Assembly (NCBI GenBank): GCA_965644295.1
Contig: CBFFRP010000066.1
Span: 1-64,000 of the forward strand
Length of the DNA stretch: 64,000 bases
From: Paraphysomonas bandaiensis
Lineage: Eukaryota > Protista > Chrysophyceae
Direction: 5' to 3'
Positions 3,101 through 15,440 of the stretch are shown piece by piece. The notes beneath the pieces were generated by a model. It saw nothing but the letters and a program-made list of their open reading frames with translations. It was not told where the DNA came from and did not search any database. Both the position numbers and the translations under genes were made by a program. Position 1 is the stretch's first letter, and every line of letters begins with the position of its first letter.

Positions 3101-4141
3101 AGCCCAAGGAGAACGACTCTTTCGGTAGAAATAGCCACACAGTCGCCGAAACTCCTTCTCCGAAGCCTCCCACAGCTTAGGATTGATCGGGCGAGCCTTT
3201 GGTTTCATTCGGTCCGGGAGAGTGCTTTTCCATTTTAGAGACAAAGGGTCCACACCTCTCACACCGCTCCATTCGTCAGGCACGAACACTTTTTCAGCCT
3301 TCGTTGACAACAATTCCATAATCTTAGTTTCACTTTTCATTTCATCACTGACATGAGTCTCTATCTGCTCATGATAGTCTTGGAGGGCTTCCTCCCTAGA
3401 CTTTCCTAAGAATGTCAACGCATCCTTGAATTGAACCGGTAACTCAGTTTCCTCATCCTCTGGGGCAATAGCATCACTCGCTCTTGACCATGGGTGCACA
3501 CGGTCATCAGAGTCAACCGTGTCCCCTGCCAGAGATGACAACACATTCGAATTTTCATTATCGGAGACACCCTCGATTTGAGTGTCATGTGCCTCACGCA
3601 TAACAGCACACATGAAAGGATATAATTTTCCAGTCAGCGCAGGCAACCCCAAAATAATATCATTACTCGTCATATCGATCACAAAGAATTCACCCGTATA
3701 TTGATAGGTATGACTCTTCGGATCAGTCAGCACTAAATTTAATCTGACTCCTTCATTGAGATCCTTCACCGTTCTACTATCCGCCAATACCACACGGTGT
3801 TTAGCTTTATAAAAACGGCTCGGTTCTAGTTTGTTCCGCAATCTGTCCACCAAATCCCTCGACACATAATTGGCTGAGAGGGCTCCAGTGTCACACAATA
3901 TTTTTACTAACTCCTCTATTCCAAATTTTCTATCTAAAGTAATCCTTCCTATAGTGTGCGCTGAAGAGAAGCTCTTGGATGAAGGATAGCAGGGATACAG
4001 CTTAGCCTGATCCCCGATACAGACATTGGAGGAATTCGCAAACTCATTAAGATCATTAGAATGCACTGAACATTCATCATTCTCATCCCGAGTCTTTGAA
4101 TTGGAATCCTCCTTGTCTGTATCGTCACATCCACCGAACCA
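158..4141 (-). CDS. pol: Ty3/gypsy (chromovirus-like) Pol: aspartic protease, RT, RNase H, integrase, chromodomain
   Basis: Protease LCDTGALS; RT IDLTNAFHQI...MPEGI...IFDN; RNase H TDASELGIG...EQEAYG...TDHNNL...ADWLSR; integrase HHCC (HNARVGH...CPNC) and D-D-E (GIDAVE, ISDQG, GCERI); chromo-like VIDEILYYRG. The frame is open back to 4141, directly after the gag stop. Confidence 0.95.
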   Translation of the reverse strand, partial: WFGGCDDTDKEDSNSKTRDENDECSVHSNDLNEFANSSNVCIGDQAKLYPCYPSSKSFSSAHTIGRITLDRKFGIEELVKILCDTGALSANYVSRDLVDRLRNKLEPSRFYKAKHRVVLADSRTVKDLNEGVRLNLVLTDPKSHTYQYTGEFFVIDMTSNDIILGLPALTGKLYPFMCAVMREAHDTQIEGVSDNENSNVLSSLAGDTVDSDDRVHPWSRASDAIAPEDEETELPVQFKDALTFLGKSREEALQDYHEQIETHVSDEMKSETKIMELLSTKAEKVFVPDEWSGVRGVDPLSLKWKSTLPDRMKPKARPINPKLWEASEKEFRRLCGYFYRKSRSPWASCLVVAPKATPPYIRFCGDYVQINKHMEVGNYTIPNVKHELDKIINFPLYMDIDLTNAFHQIPLDDETSERLSIQTPWGQFAPNFMPEGIAPATGVLQETVREIFDDFSEWAIVIFDNMLILANDAKDAYEKFEKIIDRCIERNVKLKMPKSWLGFRKVDFFGYVCRHKSYEVNPDKKEALGKIPMPTNTKQARSLLGKGVFFSSFTPRYSDLVAHLTDMTKSSFNWDKSTWRHDYEAEYRRFIAGLQDACELFYPDYNLEWTLRTDASELGIGSVLLQKKILENGSIQWQPIAFISKKFSAQAQKWSTIEQEAYGIFYSVKHLAYYLIGKQFTIETDHNNLLWMESSDVPKITRWRIFLQSFNFSIRHISGAKNWLADWLSREHQVAVLSGIFPEEEYDDAYFMGDDCNEYEYFNFLGNFMNPDDREIEDPPTSHVSPETALREVHNARVGHMGGRATWIRLNKEFPGHNIPYKVVEDYISKCPNCVKTRLAMKEALIPIVRNLKPPNARSAIGIDAVEITPHGAEGYTHINVVVNLFTKFVYLEPVKGVTALNLANTIWKYWSHYGHTDLIISDQGPDLTSDLFKQLTEYMGVRHTFSIANRHANGCERIIGEVVRHLRALVYDYSEREERQDIFEDPSWLASVQYLLNSEVSSETGFSPFELTFGSKDLDYLNMDIKDLPDRAHARLTALNDQLAQLREASKAYQQKLATERAGTGVHPDRQNRYQPGDFVLFDKGAKVHPKMSHRYMGPFSVKSQYKNDVDCQHLATGQVVRVSVSDVKLFPGDSDAAYKMALRDQDQHVIDEILYYRGDREVRSTMVFTVRFQDGDVREVPYSKDIFDSVPYAEFCSRKRYLYHLIYTADYAKKYIADFRRQPITQFQPGDLAYVDLRIYGDAWYDELELPDSHLITYVAPIQFTHWYHKSSKRVLSVKDLLTLRTYRYDNYLVHCFVHSEVNASTMVLVDEDFANKYPQVRASY

Positions 4142-7083
4142 TCAAGGGCGGGAATCACCGAAGTGATCCCTCCTCAAGATGGTCGGTTGTTTGTCCCTCT
4201 GCTCCGAACTTCCCGCAGACTTAAGATACGCATCGATCTTGTCCCGCATTTCGGACGCAGAATCCAACAGACATTTCGCATTATGATTATAAGGACAGTC
4301 TGTTTTGTCGCACTTGCCATACATGATTTTTCTTAGACACCCATACTTATCGGTCTTATTATTCTGAGCACCAGTTGGTCTAGCATGCATGGCTGACAGA
4401 GACCTATCAGAGTTAAAACGACGCTCCTCATCAACTGCTGCGTCATTACCCGACATTGGTTTCACATCTGTCATCATAGCGACTTGTTTATCGTCATGTA
4501 CCTCCAGATTACTGGACCGCCAAGTCTCACTCGGAGCATCCCACAAATCATCATCATTGGGTACATACCCATCATTATCATCCCACTCATCGTTATAGTT
4601 TCCTCCAGACTCATCGTAAGTATCTAGATGTGACACTTGCGAAACCCTTGGTTTAGAATCAACACGACTGTTCAACGAAGGTTTGTTGGACTGTTGAGAG
4701 AATAGTTCCTTTCTCCTCTTAAGATAGTCCTCGTGCTTCTGTTGAAACATCGTAGTCGACTCCATAGGTAACTGTCGGTACGCGATGGTTACTTGATAAT
4801 GATCCAAGAGTACAGCCGAATACTCTTTGAAAAATTCGCTCATAGAGTCAAATTTATTTGTCGACATGCACCCCAACACATACTTAACATAGGTCCCGTC
4901 ATTCAAAGTCTTAAAGAGTCTTATCAATCCGTACTCTTTGTCATCGATACGAGGACACCATGTTTTGTTTGAGACCAACATGATAGACAACATTGTTTGG
5001 AACGACTGCATCAAGTTCAATTGCTGATGATAGAATGCCTCAAAAGTCACAGCATTTACATACTTCCAGTCCATAATTTGGATATGTTTCAATGAATCTC
5101 TGAGTTCATTATAAAATGCCACGCAATTGAACACTTTGGTCTCCTGAGCCACAATGAGAAGCAAATCCGAAACATCCATTTGTGCTAGCTGCGCATGTGT
5201 GATGCTGTACACATTCCGCAGATGTGCCTTCAAACTGGTTGAAAGTACCTTTTGAATTCGCACCTCAGTTTCTTCTTGCTCTTGAAACTCTAAGATGTCT
5301 TTGATCGCTTTCGCCACTTTACCCAACTTGAAGTCATTGATGCGAACATGACACCTCCTTTCCTCTCTAGTTATGGTAAAAGCAAACTTTTTTCAAACTT
5401 GGGAAAAATTTCTAAATTTGGGACTTTTTAAAAAATTCATCATGAAAACCTCATGTTTATTGATGATATAATTTAGACAGAGGTAATGTTATAGAAGTAA
5501 GTGTTACTAAGTGTATGATATAGATATACTATATAGATATATGATATATGTATTATTATTATATAATATGAATACTCTTCTCTACTAATAACTATAATTT
5601 TCAATTCTCTTCCTGTTACGTTTACCAATGAGTACAGGCGCAGCTCCAACCGCTCCTGTGTCTACCCAATCCGTATTTGGAACAACTTCGATATCCCACC
5701 TACCTGATGTATTCGTTTTCTTCTTTCCGGAGGGTTTTATTGCAGGTTTCAACTCTTTCTGCCTTATACCTCTGATAATTTCACCATCTATAAATTCTAT
5801 ATCATACCTACCATCTTTATATCCAATAACACTACCATTGAAATTATATATATTTCTAATTTTCTCACCAACAGCATATAGTTGCAAATCATCACTACTA
5901 CAACTACTATCACTGGAATCAGATTCATATCTTTCTGAAGCCTGAGTTTTATCGACAACAACGCTATCCCTTGAGCTGCTGTAATTATCAACACAATCTT
6001 CCTCATCACTGATATCTGAAAGCTGAATAGTCTTGTGTCGCTTCCTTAAATTTTTAATCCTCCTTCCCTTATTTTTTCGCCGACTTATCATACTACTCGC
6101 GGTTTCAAATTGGTTATCCACCTCTGCGGACGACATAGAATCCGTTTCTGGTCTACAACGTCTAGTGTTACAAGTCGTTCGAAGCCTTCTTGCATGATGA
6201 TGGCTTGCAGATTGACTGGTACTACTACACAAACAAAATAGATAAGGAAGGTTATTTTTTATCAAAAAGTTATTTGAATCTCACCATTGCATGATGTTGT
6301 CATCTTCGCTACTACTTTCACAATCAACGGAGGCATCCGACAATACCACTCCACCACCATTATTGCTGGATATCGATTGTGCACGCGTAGATACGTCTGC
6401 AATATCGCGAAGCAAAACTACACCTTGATTTCCCACTCCATCAGGTGGCGAATCTATTTCACCAAACGCACTCCATCAGGTGGCGAATCTATTTCACCAA
6501 ACAGTTAAACTGTTTTGGCACTAGCCACCTCAGAACTTTTCTTCAAATCCCTGAATAACTTGCCCGCTTTCTTGCCCTTGAAGATGTTATCCATGAGGGT
6601 AGGCACATCATTAGCACCATCACCATCAACATCGGGATTCGAACCATCGTCCTCCTTGTTGCTATTATCTTCCTCCTGAGGAATAATGCGAAACTTAGCC
6701 ATGTTTTCCAGAGTGGAATACCTCGGCTGACGTTTGTGTTTCGACGTGCGCTTGGTAACCTTTTGCCGCTGATGTGAGCCCACAGAAGCCTGAGACTGAC
6801 TGCTCTCACCATCCTCAACATTTTGTACTCTATTCTCCAATATTTGCATCCTGCTGCTGAGGTTAGACACTGCAGTAGCCACCTCTGTAAAAGACTGAGA
6901 CATGGCACGAACTGTGTCCAAAATCTCCTGGTTTGGATTGATGTTTGGAGCAGAAGACTCCTGAACGACATCCTGCACACCTCCAGCAGCATCTTGTTTG
7001 GTTTCACCACTACCAGCGGCTTCCTGATCTTTCCCAGGAGTTTTCTTGCCGCCTCTCCTCGTTTTACCAGTCGGAGTAGACAT
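4142..7083 (-). CDS. gag: Gag of the gypsy element, split by a 1.13-kb insertion (coding 7083-6508 plus 5377-4142)
   Basis: Removing 5378-6507 restores ...AKTV-TITREERRCHVRINDFKLGK... in frame, about 603 aa. Coiled-coil N-terminus and C-terminal C-x8-C-x4-C-x3-H finger, directly upstream of pol. Confidence 0.85.
5378..6507 (-). other. Captured intron-containing gene fragment (Tudor/SH3-like C-terminal domain) inserted in gag
   Basis: Exon (about 6467-6285), 60-nt GTGAG...TAG intron (6284-6225), exon to stop at 5585 (YAVGEKIRNIYNFNGSVIGYKDGRYDIEFIDGE), then AT-rich tail. 35-bp tandem duplication at 6434-6502. No TIRs, only AA microhomology. Confidence 0.7.
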
Positions 7084-8546: not shown

Positions 8547-11033
8547 TCAATAGCGTGTTACTATAGCCACGTAGATAGGGCATGGGAAATGCCACGTGGT
8601 CACAGTCGTGACAGGTGAGTGTGACTTGTTGTGCAATGACGATATTCTATTCACGGCGTCTATTACTATTTGCGTGGTCACCATCTTCACCCAGTTGGTC
8701 CTACTCACATATTTATTTGTTTTAAGGTTTAAAAATATCCAACTCCCGTTTGCGTTGCCGGATGGGTACAGCGCGATACATGGTTCTGTTCTGGCCTGCT
8801 CCGCGTTATTGCTCTTGACCTTCGGGTCATAGCATTCTACGTAGTCCCCGAAAGCCAGTGACAGTTCCTTTTTATAATTGGGTTTCCGACCAGTCAATGC
8901 CACTCGCGGTGCTACAGTTGTGCCATTGGTGGATGGCCTCCTCAAGTTCATGCGGCTGTTGGCGTATCTCACCAGGTCTCTGACGTTGGCATCTGGTAGG
9001 TTCCATGGTAGCCCTGAATGTACACTGCGTATTGCCTCTTTGAGTCGCCTAATCTTCGCGTCGATCTTGTCCAGGTGATCTCCAGCCCCTGCCACGTCAA
9101 TCTCCATCCCTGTGATCTTGCCTCTCAGGGCCTTGAATCCCGGCTGAGGGTCCAGGTAGGTAACTGTCGGTATGTACCCGTAGCTTCTTAACAGGTTTAC
9201 TTGTTCCTGTAGGGCCAATCCCAACTGATCCGTTGTTTCGTTTTCGAGTGAAGTAACGATGGTTAGTCCCAATGGTTCCGCTAGTGTGAGCATGAACGAT
9301 TGCTGTCTCACACTGAAGATGTCTGTGTACAGCCTTTGCTCCTTCTGCTGTTCTGCCTTCAGTTCCGGATCCGCGTATTGCCGGCTGACTTTCTTATTCG
9401 TCTGCTTGCCTCTCACCGCTTCGAACGGTCTCCCATATATGTCAAAAGCTCTTCTGATATCACTCGGGGTAAGTCGCACCCCTGTAACGTTTCCGTCGCT
9501 CACTAGCTGCACAGCATCTCTCTCCGAGTCGAAGCCCGAGTTTCGGATCAGGTCTCGTGCTTCTCGCGCTCTCGCGACTTCTACTTTCGAATATTGGGCT
9601 TCGCGCTCCGCTACAGTCGTTACGTTGACTTTGGCCGTCGCCCAGTCGCGCATGTCGGCCACATACATCTTGTTCTTTCGATAGAAAGTCAAATCACTGT
9701 CAGGTAAGTGGACAGTGAAAGACTCTCCCTGCCTATATGTCACTTCATATATGTCTTCTACGTCCGCCTGACATAGCACGCTTGCCCTTAGCTCATCTGC
9801 TGTCTTACAGGTGAAGAATTGGTCTAGCTCGCCTACATTCGGTAGTTCCAGTGCGTGTCCCGATAATCCCGCCACGGTGCATCCTTTGGACGCCGGTCTT
9901 ACATTGTTCAGTAGTCTTGGGTGTACTACCGAGACATCCGCCTGGTTGTCGAGTAATACTTCGTACCATTGGAATGGCTCGCTTCCTGACGTGAAGGCGT
10001 TCAACATTGTTGTCGTGCAGTGCTTGTTTTCTGATTCTTGGCTACTGTCTGGGCATTCGTTCATTCTGTGGCCTGGCTCACCGCAGCCCCAACATATGAG
10101 CTGCCTTTTTTTCTGACCACGTTTGCTGTTGTGCGACTTCGTGTCGTTCCCTTGTTGCTGCTCTGGTGTATCATCGCTATCTGCTGATTTCTTGCCTTTG
10201 TCAGACTTCGATTTGCTCACGAATGCGGATCCGCCGCCTGCTCTCGTTGCTCTCTTCGGCGTTAGATATTTTGATGCTTTAGTATATATTTCATTTACAT
10301 GCGTAGGTGCTGTTTGCGTTCCCATTGTTAGATCGTTGAGGTAGCTAGTTTTGAACTCGCCATATCTCGTGTCGTCCAGCCCTTCGAAGAAATCCATCGC
10401 GATGTCCTCTTCATTCATTTCCGCGTTGTTCATGTCTTTGTAGGCTTCTAATAGATGATCAAACCTCTCCTTATAAGTAACTATACTCTCATATGCTCCC
10501 TGTTTAGCGTCTTTGTACCTTTTCCTCGCTTCTGCTCGTACCACTGTACTTACGCTGGAGTTAGTGGATACTTTGTGGGTTTGTTTGATAGCCAGCCATA
10601 GTAGTAGAGGATCCTTAGTCCTGTTCATGAGCTCGTATTCATCTAATAGCTTGACTGCATCCATTGATTCGTGGCTCAGATGGTCTACCATGAATGAGTA
10701 GAATGCCGATCTATCGTTCCGCATCTTGTCTATTAATCTCCCTCTGGTCTTGGTCTTGTCCTTCATCAAGTCGAGGTTGACTCCATAGGGGTCGTCTTCC
10801 AAATCAAAATCCTCTGGGTTTATCGCATCGGGCTCATAATATTTGTCCAGCTCTACTAGGCGTGCAAGATCACCGTACTTTTGCATGCCCACCACTACAA
10901 GCCTCTGTTTGAATGTGGCGAAGTTCGAGTTGGCACCGTATCTTAAAGTCGGTACATGTTCTGGTCTATCGGTGCTCGGTTTCTTGCCGAATCTTGCAAA
11001 TCTTGTTGGCTTGTCGTTCGTTGTCTTCTTCAT
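8547..11033 (-). CDS. Ty1/copia (CoDi-like) Gag-protease-integrase polyprotein, truncated before RT/RNase H
   Basis: Gag DPLLLW motif, CCHC knuckle CWGCGEPGHRMNEC, protease VLLDNQADVSVV, integrase LYTDIF...YLDPQ...KIDAKIRRLKE, C-terminal FGDYVEC...CIALYPSGN. Order is PR-INT with no RT. Confidence 0.85.
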   Translation of the reverse strand: MKKTTNDKPTRFARFGKKPSTDRPEHVPTLRYGANSNFATFKQRLVVVGMQKYGDLARLVELDKYYEPDAINPEDFDLEDDPYGVNLDLMKDKTKTRGRLIDKMRNDRSAFYSFMVDHLSHESMDAVKLLDEYELMNRTKDPLLLWLAIKQTHKVSTNSSVSTVVRAEARKRYKDAKQGAYESIVTYKERFDHLLEAYKDMNNAEMNEEDIAMDFFEGLDDTRYGEFKTSYLNDLTMGTQTAPTHVNEIYTKASKYLTPKRATRAGGGSAFVSKSKSDKGKKSADSDDTPEQQQGNDTKSHNSKRGQKKRQLICWGCGEPGHRMNECPDSSQESENKHCTTTMLNAFTSGSEPFQWYEVLLDNQADVSVVHPRLLNNVRPASKGCTVAGLSGHALELPNVGELDQFFTCKTADELRASVLCQADVEDIYEVTYRQGESFTVHLPDSDLTFYRKNKMYVADMRDWATAKVNVTTVAEREAQYSKVEVARAREARDLIRNSGFDSERDAVQLVSDGNVTGVRLTPSDIRRAFDIYGRPFEAVRGKQTNKKVSRQYADPELKAEQQKEQRLYTDIFSVRQQSFMLTLAEPLGLTIVTSLENETTDQLGLALQEQVNLLRSYGYIPTVTYLDPQPGFKALRGKITGMEIDVAGAGDHLDKIDAKIRRLKEAIRSVHSGLPWNLPDANVRDLVRYANSRMNLRRPSTNGTTVAPRVALTGRKPNYKKELSLAFGDYVECYDPKVKSNNAEQARTEPCIALYPSGNANGSWIFLNLKTNKYVSRTNWVKMVTTQIVIDAVNRISSLHNKSHSPVTTVTTWHFPCPIYVAIVTRY

Positions 11034-11314: not shown

Positions 11315-11899
11315 TCCTCTTATTTCTCTACGGTATGTATGTACATGTATTGTGTAGATGTAGATATTGTTGAATTCCATTGTACAATTGAATACGTAGT
11401 AATACTGTTACCTCAATCACCTACAAATGGAATATTCCATAAGGGTGAGGGGGAAAACCATATATATAAATACCAGATATTTATGAAGAAAGCATATGTT
11501 TTTCTCGGGACATGTGCTTTCGTCAACTTGGCAAAGAGTTTCTTGAAGAAAATAACCAAAAATTTGTGTGGACTTCAACTGCATCATCACTGGATCCAAA
11601 AACTTCAATATTCATATCTTCATGTCATAAAAATCTATGGTTTCTATATGTATTTGAATATTATATGGATCTTTTCATAGGGTTACATCATGTGTATGTG
11701 TCATATGTATCACATATACATGCATTAGTCACTTTACATAACTTTATATAGCTTTAAATAGCTTTGAACAAGAGTTAGTGGAGTAATAGAAGTCTTCTTG
11801 TAAGAACTATCATCAATTCATTGCATTGTTTGCATATTAATTGATTGATATTATATACATTCTATCGACTCACCACAGCCGTACATTACCTTTAAAAAT

Positions 11900-14820
11900 A
11901 TGGAAATGGTTGCACAACCAGTTGATCCAGAGGTATGTCTATCAAGCGACATTACTGTTGAAACAGATACGACATCATTGGAGTCACTTATTGATAAGTA
12001 TCCTGTGATTGTATTCTCTAAATCTACGTGTCCATTCTGCATTGAGCTGAAGCGCATGTTATCTACTTATGGAGTACATTATCAATGTGTTGAACTTGAT
12101 CAAACAAATAAAATGAAAGAATATCAATTGGAATTGAAAGATAAATATGGGATAAGTACGGTACCTGCTTTGTTTGTGGATAAGAAATTGGTTGGTGGCT
12201 GTACAGCAGCCAAGGAACTGGAGTTTAAGGGTGATTTTCAAAACCTGATTACTAAACATGTCACTAAGGACATTCCGCATGAGACCCGTGTATCTCGATT
12301 TAACTTTTTTTACTTTCCCGAATCAGTAAACAAAAATGCTGTGCGTGTTTCGGGATTGCTCTCAATGATCTATGCCATTCTCTGTGTTGGTTTTTACAAT
12401 CGACGCGAAACAAAATGGTTTGTATTGGCTATAGCAATAGACTACTTTCTTCGGATTATTTTTGGTGGAAATGGTGCCCCGATAGGTATGATAGCCAATG
12501 TAATTGTTGCTCCTTTCCCCCCTGTCTTCTCAGCCGGCCCCCCAAAACAATTTGCGGCGTGCTGTGGATGGTTCATGACTGCTCTTTCAGCAGCCTTGTA
12601 CTTAAGTGGCCAGCAACTAGGAGGGGTAATTATGATTGCAATGCTGATTCCACCAGCTGGAATGGAAGGAATTCTTGACTTTTGTTTGGTGGGGTTATTA
12701 CTTCTATTGTAAATGTCATAGTAATCGTATTATTCTCAGGGATGTTGGATGTTCGGGATGGCCATCAAATTCAAGATCGTACCTCCATCTATCTACCGCC
12801 CCTTTCTTAATTATTACCCGGCGAAAAAATGGGCCTACGATTTTGCGAACATTCCTAACAATTCATTAGAGCATGTAGAAAGTACTCATGTATTGCTTCC
12901 CGGTCAGACTCAGGAGACTCCAGTGGATTTAATTCGTAAAGATCGCGTGGAGACGGAGTACAAGAACCAGGATGCCAGCATCCGACACGTGACAGTGGAT
13001 TACTATGCTTTTCCTTTGGCTGTGTCGGCCTTGGCTCTTGTCTTTAAGACCACTGCTGATGGAGGAAGATCTCCTTCAGGAGATATTGTGGCTCAGTGGG
13101 GAACAAAGAAGATATTCCAGGCCTTAGGCATCGCTTCTGGAATTGTGTTCGGCTTAATCACACTTGCCTATTTATTCAAGGCCGTAATGTGGTTTAAAAA
13201 AATTCGTAAGGAGTGGATTCATCCCGTGTACGGAAATTTCTTCAGCGCAATCACTATGTGTTTGACAATATTCGGAGTACTTTTGTTTGACGAGGCCCTA
13301 AGATTTGGTATTGCACTTATCTGGATTGGAGCTGTTGGACAGATGACTATCACTGTAGTTCGAGTGTCCGAACTAATATACGACCGAGTCTCTAATGAAT
13401 TCATAACCCCTGCGTTGATGATGGCACCCGTTGGGAATTTTCTTTCGGCTTTAGCCCTTGCCTTGTATCCAATTCAAGATGGGGCAAAGCTTGACGATGT
13501 GAACTACGTATTTATTGCTCGTCTGTGGTTTGCAGTAGCAGCTGTATTTACAGTGGTGCTATTCACATTGACGCTTCATAAGTCTATTGTTGACCCTCAT
13601 GTCGACCCTCGCATGAGGTCTATGAATTGGATATGGATGGCTACTTTTTCTCTTGCCGGACCTGCGTACCTTGCTGTTTCTGACCATTCATTTTTTATTC
13701 AAATTGCTGTCGCCAGGGGGGTCCTTTATCAGAGCATGTGGTTGTTTGCTGTATTTTTGTTTGCCGTCAATAGCATTGGGTGGATTCGAGGGTTTTATTC
13801 TTGGGTGGAGGATAGGTCTATTTGGACCATAGGATTTTCGTGTTCCGCTCTTGCTTATAGTACCATACAGTACTATATGATTGTGGACGATTTCTTCACG
13901 CGTACTGTAGCAATTATCGCGATTGCTATTGCTTCTGTGACGGTTGCAGTCTGCTTCCTGTATACATCAATGTGGGCAGTCAATTTGTCTCTATTTAAGC
14001 CGCGAAACAAATGGGGTCCAGTCAGTTTCATGAAGCTCACTCATGAGGTGTTTCGATTTGCTCTGCCTAATTTACAGAAGAACTTGTCCACTCTTTCGTC
14101 TGCAGGCAATCCTATTGCTATTGAAAACTTTATCGCTGAATTGGAGCAGTTTTTCGTGGTATATGGCGAACACGCACAGCATGAGGACTCTATTTTGTTT
14201 CCATCCCTACGACGCTTCCATCCAGGGCTGAATCCCGATATGGATTCAGAGCATGAACTGGGGCACACTCTTGTCAACGACATGAAGGCTGCAATGATGT
14301 CATACAAGAATGATGGTACTGCTGAAAATTTACTGTCTGTACTTCAATTGAAGCTGCCGGAGTTTATCAATCATACTCTTGAACATGCAAGGAACGAAGA
14401 ATCTACCATAACTGTCGTTGCTCGGAAGTACCTCACATTAGATCAGCAGAAAGAAATTACAAATCGTGTTTGGGAGTCGACCCCAACTGAGAGTTGGTAT
14501 CGTGTCATCCCATATGTACTTACGAATCTGCCTGTACCGATGTGGAAGGTACGGTAAATGGTAACCATATTATGTACTGGTCAATATTATTCGCAGTTAT
14601 GCCGTGCTTCTATTGTATTGTACTAATTATTTATATTAATATTACGCTTGTTATTTAGATCCGCTATTTGAAGACTTTTATTTGGGCGAACCCTGATCGC
14701 GCCCAAGAGATTGGAATCCTTTGTTATCGAACATTGAATTCCCTTGATTGGAGTTTTGTCTCCAAGGAGCTACCAGAGATTGTGCCGCGTGGATTACCGG
14801 GATGGAGACGCGTGTACTAA
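11900..14820 (+). CDS. Glutaredoxin-DUF4395-SLAC1/TehA (TDT) channel-hemerythrin fusion, about 919 aa; exons 11900-12688, 12740-14548, 14659-14820
   Basis: Grx CPFC, TVP, GGC; DUF4395-like VNKNAVR, PPKQFA, FCL/GC across a 51-nt GT-AG intron; TDT motifs EWIHPVYGNFF, TPALMMAPVGN, SIWTIGFS with about 10 TM helices; hemerythrin H, HAQHE, H, HARNE. Both introns are phase 0 and join in frame. Confidence 0.85.
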
Positions 14821-15440
14821 AAGGAAGCTATCCTGCTTGGATTTGCTGAATTTAAGCGGCAATGTTTAGTCTCTTATATTTTATACTGATGCTTAAGGAT
14901 ACATCAAAAGTTTCCTGTACTTTCAGCCAAGCGTATTTCCTATAATAATTCAGTTCTTCAAGGTGTTGAGTTTTCCTTATTTATAAGCAATTAGAAGCTC
15001 TAATGTAAGGTATTCGAATTATGGCCGTTAGTTTAAGAATACAGTACATGAAAATTGTAGTTAAAAATTGTAGTACATGAATCACTGATAAGAAATATAT
15101 ACTTTTGATGAAGCGCTGTTAAATGAGAGTTGCAGAGTAAATTCAACAGGATTTTTACTTCTTGTACGAGATTTACACACTTTATAGACTTTATAGCAAG
15201 ATGTGGTTGTAAATCGTAAATGCGAGCAAATTTAGGGTTGCAATAACGCAGGTAAAAGAATCAAGTCAAGGAAAAAATACTGTAAATGTAATTAGTAATT
15301 AGGCCGCGAGAAGATGATATAAAAATACGCAGCTACTATACTATAGTCAAGTTTCACCCACCGCATATTCACTCTATAAATAGTACATTATGTACAAAAC
15401 TGGACCCAAGACAATACTAAGGGTAGTTGATGTGCTGTAT

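Follow-up and report, generated by a model that had tools for sequence, protein, structure and literature searches.

A conserved glutaredoxin-DUF4395-TDT-hemerythrin fusion protein of Paraphysomonas bandaiensis and other algae, a candidate sensor-gated anion pathway

At positions 11900-14820 of the first 64,000 nucleotides (nt) of contig CBFFRP010000066.1 from the chrysophyte Paraphysomonas bandaiensis (assembly GCA_965644295.1; this whole stretch is the window below), the plus strand carries two long open reading frames (ORFs), which are out of frame with each other, and a short third frame. This locus raises the question of whether these frames belong to one gene and, if so, what a protein could do that carries a glutaredoxin, the orphan domain DUF4395, a pore domain of the TDT/SLAC1/TehA type and a hemerythrin-like domain in a row. 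A preliminary description, made from the letters alone, had spliced two listed ORFs and an unlisted last exon into one protein of about 919 residues and had suggested a sensor-channel. We found that the locus is transcribed into one spliced, polyadenylated mRNA for one polytopic membrane protein of 919 residues. New is the combination of glutaredoxin, TDT and hemerythrin-like domains with DUF4395 in one conserved polypeptide; each of the domain types is already known.

The ORF listing gave frames at 11900-12712 and 12749-14557 together with the short frame at 14668-14820. Reading of the DNA placed the 3' end of exon 1 (GAC TTT TGT TTG) at 12688, the start of exon 2 (GGA TGT TGG ATG) at 12740 and its last codon, AAG, at 14548, and a single frame was kept across the three exons (263 + 603 + 53 = 919 codons). 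A database protein, P0001 (917 residues), is identical to the spliced product from the second methionine on and crosses both junctions, with ...DFCLGCWMFG... at the first and ...PMWKIRYLKTF... at the second. Its source is contig L001, 3072 nt long, of a JGI RNA data set, which contains no introns, has an unbroken ORF, ends in a poly-A run and aligned with the window in three blocks (11747-12689, 12739-14548 and 14657-14969) at 99.7-100% identity. Both GT..AG joints recurred in the assembled contigs of four RNA runs taken from separate studies, among them a marine metatranscriptome that had been selected for poly-A, and in runs X8 and X9 one contig each spanned 11747-14963. The junctions proposed in the preliminary description, 12688/12740 and 14548/14659, were thus exact in L001 and in the four runs, and where transcripts of separate genes were looked for, a single mRNA was seen instead. 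Genome and transcript assemblies of other samples differed at four single bases (window 11819, 11992, 12592 and 13834), one in the 5' untranslated region and three at third codon positions; all are non-coding or synonymous, a pattern that fits strain variation kept in check by purifying selection.

These transcript data also bear on the suspicion that two or three neighbouring genes were wrongly joined by the gene model or the assembly. Apart from the tendency of prokaryote-style gene callers to split the fusion family at introns, we found no support for it; intron-free poly-A contigs from independent runs cover the whole coding region, and the joined frame matches its relatives residue by residue over both junctions. 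We regard such an artefact as next to impossible, as a wrong joining of separate genes is ruled out by the transcript contigs that span both junctions. The features of the gene are collected in Table 1.

Table 1. Coordinates of the fusion gene and of its predicted domains in the window (nt, nucleotides; aa, amino acid residues).
Feature	Position	Strand	Basis or content
mRNA	11747..14969	+	5' end at or before 11747; poly-A site about 14963-14969 (alignment of contig L001; RNA contigs X8 and X9)
Exon 1, coding, 263 codons	11900..12688	+	N-terminal tail, glutaredoxin, DUF4395 through Cys-Leu of CLGC
Intron 1, 51 nt, GT..AG	12689..12739	+	transcript alignments
Exon 2, 603 codons	12740..14548	+	end of DUF4395, conserved linker, TDT domain, hemerythrin-like domain
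Intron 2, 110 nt, GT..AG	14549..14658	+	transcript alignments
Exon 3, 53 codons and stop	14659..14820	+	codons 14659-14817, stop ending at 14820; terminal part of the conserved helical C-terminal extension
Glutaredoxin, aa 36-98	12005..12193	+	PF00462 3.4e-16; TIGR02180 GRX_euk 7.7e-22
DUF4395 four-helix membrane domain, aa 143-263	12326..12688, on into exon 2 to about 12790	+	PF14340 1.6e-17; genome search
C-L / G-C motif (FCxGC in the family)	12683..12745	+	Cys codons 12683-12685 and 12743-12745; intron 1 between Leu and Gly
Linker, predicted cytosolic, 34 residues (HVLLPGQT..VDLIRKDR.ETEYK.QD..IRH)	12887..12988	+	column counts in the 26-relative alignment
TDT/SLAC1/TehA domain, about 10 helices	12986..13966	+	exon-2 aa 83-409; gate Phe codon TTT 13835-13837
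Hemerythrin-like four-helix bundle, exon-2 aa 427-557	14018..14410	+	PF01814 1.9e-7; predicted ligands H, HxxxE, H, HxxxE

The preliminary description had recognised in the spliced product a dithiol glutaredoxin with the active site CPFC, a DUF4395-like domain with four transmembrane helices, a TDT domain of about ten helices keeping the phenylalanine of helix 9, and a domain with the pattern H-HxxxE-H-HxxxE. All four assignments held up in the profile searches, in which every domain match lay above the Pfam curated cut-off. Domain searches were run per exon and work on the whole protein was done with P0001, so that residues given for exon 2 domains are counted within exon 2. Conservation was read from a close-relative alignment of 26 full-length sequences (29-47% identity) and from a wider alignment of 73 long, divergent relatives, the great majority of which kept the three hallmarks described in the following, namely the FCxGC motif, the gate phenylalanine and the metal ligands.

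The pore domain matched PF03595 over practically its full length (profile positions 1-330 of 331; E = 9.1e-24, 84.6 bits against a cut-off of 27.9), and the NCBIfam profiles tdt (TIGR00816, 5.2e-19, below the subfamily cut-off) and TehA (3e-13) were also hit. Its best solved relative was TehA from Haemophilus influenzae (3m71, 5e-9), and in the HMMER alignment to 3m71 the phenylalanine of the IWTIGFS motif fell on the TehA gate residue F262. F262 of TehA and F450 of SLAC1 are pore-gating phenylalanines located on helix 9, and TDT pores consist of ten transmembrane helices and form trimers of independent pores. Hydropathy analysis of the window protein revealed a hydrophobic block at 345-679 that is consistent with about ten helices, and the gate phenylalanine was present in 26/26 close relatives; of the 70 sequences of the wider alignment that are not gapped at this position, 69 carry it. 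Few stretches of the family are as well conserved as the linker in front of the pore domain (D324, K328 and E334, in P0001 numbering, each in 26/26), which corresponds to no Pfam family.

The hemerythrin-like domain scored 32.0 bits with PF01814 (cut-off 25.3), and its predicted ligands were almost invariant in the close relatives, with H696, H810 and E814 in 26/26 and H739, E743 and H766 in 25/26. A model of the C-terminal 238 residues (predicted local distance difference test, pLDDT, 93.9; predicted template modelling score 0.90) consisted of a long four-helix bundle and then five short helices. When it was searched against 48,161 solved chains, the top three matches were all hemerythrin-like (NMB1532, Z 13.8; PF0695, Z 13.5; FBXL5, Z 12.7) and spanned 150-169 residues, 150 of the 151 residues being aligned in the case of the FBXL5 iron-sensor domain; Foldseek agreed. 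The family profile, run against solved structures, retrieved FBXL5 best (7e-5) and the di-iron repair protein YtfE next (9e-4), and H739/E743 and H810/E814 aligned with H57/E61 and H126/E130 of FBXL5. As helical bundles score high by chance, we take the fold match as supportive and the ligand pattern as the stronger evidence. Judged by sequence and model, the domain contains a putative di-iron site with a full ligand set. It is followed by a conserved helical tail (..FIWANP.RAQEIG....PEI(I/V)PRG..G..R.Y) that ends in exon 3 and in which G204, P224, P228, R229 and G230 were invariant (alignment A3).

At the other end of the protein, the active site CPFC of the glutaredoxin (aa 44-47, 12029-12040) is accompanied by the glutathione-site motifs TVP and GGC. 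Its first cysteine was found in 21/21 and the second in 18/21 of the close relatives having the region, the remainder carrying Ser or Val, and C[AP]FC together with TVP and GGC is also the pattern conserved in the 73 wider relatives. The residues of the glutathione site were kept throughout the 26-relative alignment (P87, G97 and G98 in 26/26; T85 and C99 in 25/26). By these signatures the domain is a glutaredoxin of the class-I dithiol type with an intact glutathione site and is predicted to be an oxidoreductase.

DUF4395 matched PF14340 with 64.5 bits (cut-off 24.5), and its model (pLDDT 85.7) was built of four long helices, with a further short one past FCxGC; it resembled, at a TM score of 0.83, an Atlas cluster whose DUF4395 proteins are mostly from bacteria. 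The CLGC motif had been described as split by intron 1, and the transcripts confirmed this C-L / G-C junction. C260 and C263, the two cysteines of FCxGC, were each kept in 24/26 close relatives, and the motif was present in about 68 of the 73 wider relatives and invariant in 12 aligned bacterial DUF4395 proteins. Close relatives keep four cysteines in this domain: besides C260/C263 these are C160, towards the outer end of the first helix, and C220, within the third. Most wider relatives and the bacterial proteins have aliphatic or small residues in place of C160 and C220. A 'CC' pair that the preliminary description had singled out was borne out in part: its second cysteine was kept in 23/26 close relatives and is variable in the wider family, and the first is not conserved. 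Neither the cysteine of transmembrane helix 1 nor that of the 'CC' pair is kept family-wide, and a relay that crosses the membrane in several steps is therefore left without support. Word-based searches found no other protein context for the DUF4395 or the hemerythrin part, returning at that sensitivity only fragments of the same family. One entry (P0147, 645 residues) has a CRAL/TRIO lipid-binding domain before glutaredoxin-DUF4395 and ends inside DUF4395.

Hydropathy analysis showed the first 144 residues to be acidic and free of hydrophobic segments, so that no signal peptide is apparent. In TehA and SLAC1 both ends are cytoplasmic. Four plus ten helices, cytoplasmic ends as in TehA and SLAC1 and the missing signal peptide would place the glutaredoxin, FCxGC, the linker and the hemerythrin-like domain all on the cytosolic side, within reach of glutathione and glutathione reductase. 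Since the hemerythrin bundle begins about 15 residues past the last pore helix, it would sit under the pore domain.

The architecture is not peculiar to P. bandaiensis. A first search returned 48 relatives, most of them 850-960 residues long and with the same four Pfam families, and a profile of the DUF4395 part retrieved 1783 hits among 1.84 billion representative proteins, 88 of them at E < 1e-30; many had 800-1090 residues and the same architecture. An ESM Atlas cluster comprised 59 eukaryotic members with the same families, mostly Chlorophyta where the phylum was known. The four-domain order occurred in chrysophytes, synurophytes and green algae, the named carriers being Chlorochromonas danica, Mallomonas annulata and a pedinophyte green alga beside many unnamed algae. 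Full or near-full four-domain members were also filed as an 'archaeon' metagenome-assembled genome (P0013, RYH22982.1) and as 'Sphagnum jensenii' (P0006, CAK9252507.1); with 43-46% identity to the window protein over exon 2, these entries are probably mis-binned or contaminating algal DNA. Relatives of 705-774 residues had raised the possibility of a true shorter variant lacking hemerythrin, which was rejected for the one that was checked, locus L088 from an ENA metagenome, as a gene call broken at an intron: its 760-residue glutaredoxin-DUF4395-SLAC1 ORF (4001-6283) is followed after 8 nt by a hemerythrin ORF of 229 residues (6292-6981). This locus has no intron inside CxGC, so intron positions differ between species. 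In the genome of the window (62.6 Mb searched) DUF4395 and hemerythrin gave one match each and TDT two. The second TDT gene (G000:C73:47602-48555; locus L004, 1303-2511, minus strand) encodes a plain protein of 402 residues without glutaredoxin, DUF4395 or hemerythrin.

Full-text literature searches found no paper that describes a glutaredoxin-DUF4395-TDT-hemerythrin fusion, and DUF4395 turned up in two of the papers searched only, with a single mention in each. PMC5156380 deals with another hemerythrin gene, the product of which is BRUTUS-like. The earlier statement that the architecture was undescribed holds in so far as the literature is concerned; the architecture is not rare, as dozens of algal clusters at 50% identity contain the fusion, automatically annotated and labelled, for example, 'tellurite resistance protein TehA-like permease/glutaredoxin'. 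Its presence in public databases under such names makes it an undescribed architecture variant and not an unseen sequence family.

What, then, might this protein do? The TDT/SLAC1 family is best understood in plant guard cells, where the channel is opened by kinases, and FBXL5, BRUTUS and RIC-type domains report iron, oxygen or nitric oxide status. The reading that we favour, to which we give about even chances, is that of a TDT-type, Phe-gated anion pathway controlled by a glutaredoxin/FCxGC thiol switch and a di-iron sensor of iron, oxygen or nitric oxide. The TDT domain would form a Phe-gated anion pore like those of TehA and SLAC1, and two built-in sensors would take the place of the kinase-targeted cytosolic tails of plant SLAC1. 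The class-I dithiol glutaredoxin, together with glutathione, would act at the membrane surface on the FCxGC pair, by reduction or deglutathionylation, and would thereby report the thiol redox state of the cytosol. The putative di-iron domain, about 15 residues past the last pore helix, would report the status of iron, oxygen or nitric oxide in the manner of FBXL5, BRUTUS and RIC-type domains, and the two sensors would jointly set anion flux. By family precedent, chloride or nitrate, sulfite, selenite or tellurite, and dicarboxylates are candidate ions. With respect to the preliminary description, this leaves a structural part that is fully supported and a functional part that is plausible, i.e. 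an interpretation that is supported in part.

Several observations weigh against this reading. All statements about the activity of the fusion family and of DUF4395 are inferred. The TDT family includes carriers such as Mae1 and Ssu1 besides channels, so the label 'channel' is a putative one. A few of the wider relatives have degenerate hemerythrin ligands, and four members (P0033, P0036, P0110 and P0182) have lost FCxGC and kept the first glutaredoxin cysteine, three of them with the full CxxC, so that FCxGC may not be the only, or the real, target of the glutaredoxin. Comparison of the DUF4395 model with the PDB (Foldseek and VIA) returned generic four-helix bundles only (Z about 8), and a known membrane thiol oxidoreductase fold was dropped as a candidate for this domain, since the structure searches revealed no likeness to DsbB, VKOR, DsbD or DoxX. 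Nor did bacterial DUF4395 genes have a conserved partner among 100 flanking ORFs from 52 loci, called crudely in high-GC genomes such that small neighbours may be missed; the commonest neighbour families were HTH_3 (6/100) and BKACE (5/100).

The main rival to the sensor-gated pathway is the uptake or export of oxyanions coupled to glutathione-dependent reduction, in which a catalytic glutaredoxin and FCxGC would act at the entrance of the TDT pore and reduce a thiol-reactive oxyanion there, be it selenite, tellurite, arsenate or a sulfite-derived species. TehA and Ssu1 are tied to tellurite and sulfite, the fusion polypeptide itself carries a class-I dithiol glutaredoxin whose glutathione site is intact, and the vicinal FCxGC pair should, judging from the order of helices in the model, lie at the cytosolic membrane surface. 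Such coupling, however, would leave the strictly conserved hemerythrin-like domain without a role and fits poorly with members that have a monothiol CxxS or CxxT glutaredoxin or lack FCxGC; the fusion protein contains no arsenate- or selenite-specific domain, and no oxyanion-metabolism gene lay beside bacterial DUF4395 in the neighbourhoods sampled. We consider this explanation rather unlikely.

Alternatively, the added domains might serve structure or assembly only, with DUF4395 as an additional membrane scaffold and the hemerythrin-like part as a metal-stabilised oligomerisation or trafficking domain of an otherwise ordinary TDT transporter. Domain fusions are common in protists, and the variable cysteines of helix 1 and of the 'CC' pair as well as the degenerate metal ligands of a few members would suit this explanation; the CxxC, TVP and GGC motifs of the glutaredoxin, FCxGC and the H/HxxxE/H/HxxxE pattern are nevertheless kept in relatives with less than 50% identity, and retention of catalytic and ligand residues despite deep divergence is not expected of mere scaffolds. 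This makes a purely structural role improbable. Still less credence can be given to a transmembrane thiol or electron relay of the DsbD/CcdA kind, in which reducing equivalents of the glutaredoxin would pass through the DUF4395 cysteines across the membrane and TDT would be an accessory. The four DUF4395 cysteines of the close relatives are the argument for it, but two of these, C160 and C220, have given way to other residues in bacteria and in most wider relatives, the PDB searches gave no structural likeness to DsbB, VKOR or DsbD, and the strongly conserved pore with its gate phenylalanine argues for transport as the central function; we regard a relay as very improbable.

The interest of the sensor-gated pathway lies in two sensor-type domains with intact predicted active sites that are hard-wired to one pore and conserved across algal groups. 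In a single polypeptide, gating of ion flux by thiol redox state, gating by a di-iron centre and the function of DUF4395, an orphan domain that is also widespread in Actinomycetota and Chloroflexota, become testable. If the reading is correct, an alga could let anoxia, iron status or oxidative stress open or close an anion pathway directly, with no kinase in between, for example for release of stored nitrate or for export of sulfite or selenite, and DUF4395 would have its first function. That the protein is the first anion channel with a covalently attached di-iron oxygen, iron or nitric oxide sensor and a glutathione-driven thiol switch is a tentative possibility on the doubtful side. The family also illustrates a problem of annotation, as prokaryote-style gene calling splits it at introns and some members are filed under unlikely organisms.

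Two further observations concern the surroundings of the gene. An ORF of 828 residues on the minus strand (window 8547-11033) has retrotransposon Gag/Pol-like content with a CCHC zinc knuckle (CWGCGEPGHRMNEC); it ends about 700 nt upstream of the transcript start, so the fusion gene lies directly beside a retroelement. Elsewhere in the same genome, silicon transporter genes gave 15 matches on six contigs.

With TehA (PDB 3M71) and plant SLAC1 the window protein shares the full-length PF03595 match, the gate phenylalanine on helix 9 and a hydrophobic span that fits about ten helices, at low sequence similarity (E of 5e-9 to TehA and 9e-4 to SLAC1). It differs from them in its flanks: the fusion carries an N-terminal glutaredoxin with the four-helix DUF4395 and a C-terminal hemerythrin-like domain, whereas plant SLAC1 has short or kinase-targeted tails. 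The class I dithiol glutaredoxins of the CPYC/CPFC type (TIGR02180) have C[AP]FC, TVP and GGC and, by profile, the thioredoxin fold in common with the window domain, which in turn scores 77 bits where their equivalog cut-off is 87, forms part of a membrane protein and is monothiol (CxxS or CxxT) in some orthologues.

The stand-alone DUF4395 proteins of Actinomycetota and Chloroflexota have the same four-helix domain with FP.PVNE, GPPK(R/Q)FA and FCxGC. They comprise 160-200 residues and are unfused, in contrast to the fused algal domain, and possess a second CxxC about 17 residues past FCxGC, nearly invariant in the 12 that were aligned, which the algal fusions lack. In these aligned bacterial proteins (loci L008-L087, match at about 6001-6500) FCxGC and the second CxxC add up to four cysteines that could bind a metal or a cluster. 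Finally, the C-terminal domain shares with FBXL5, the BRUTUS/HRZ sensors and bacterial RIC/YtfE the H, HxxxE, H, HxxxE pattern and a bundle with extra C-terminal helices. In the FBXL5 type this module is joined to an E3 ligase, whereas in the fusion it is joined directly to the last pore helix and, unlike the FBXL5/RIC-type domains, continues into an extra conserved helical tail of 75 residues that belongs to no known family.

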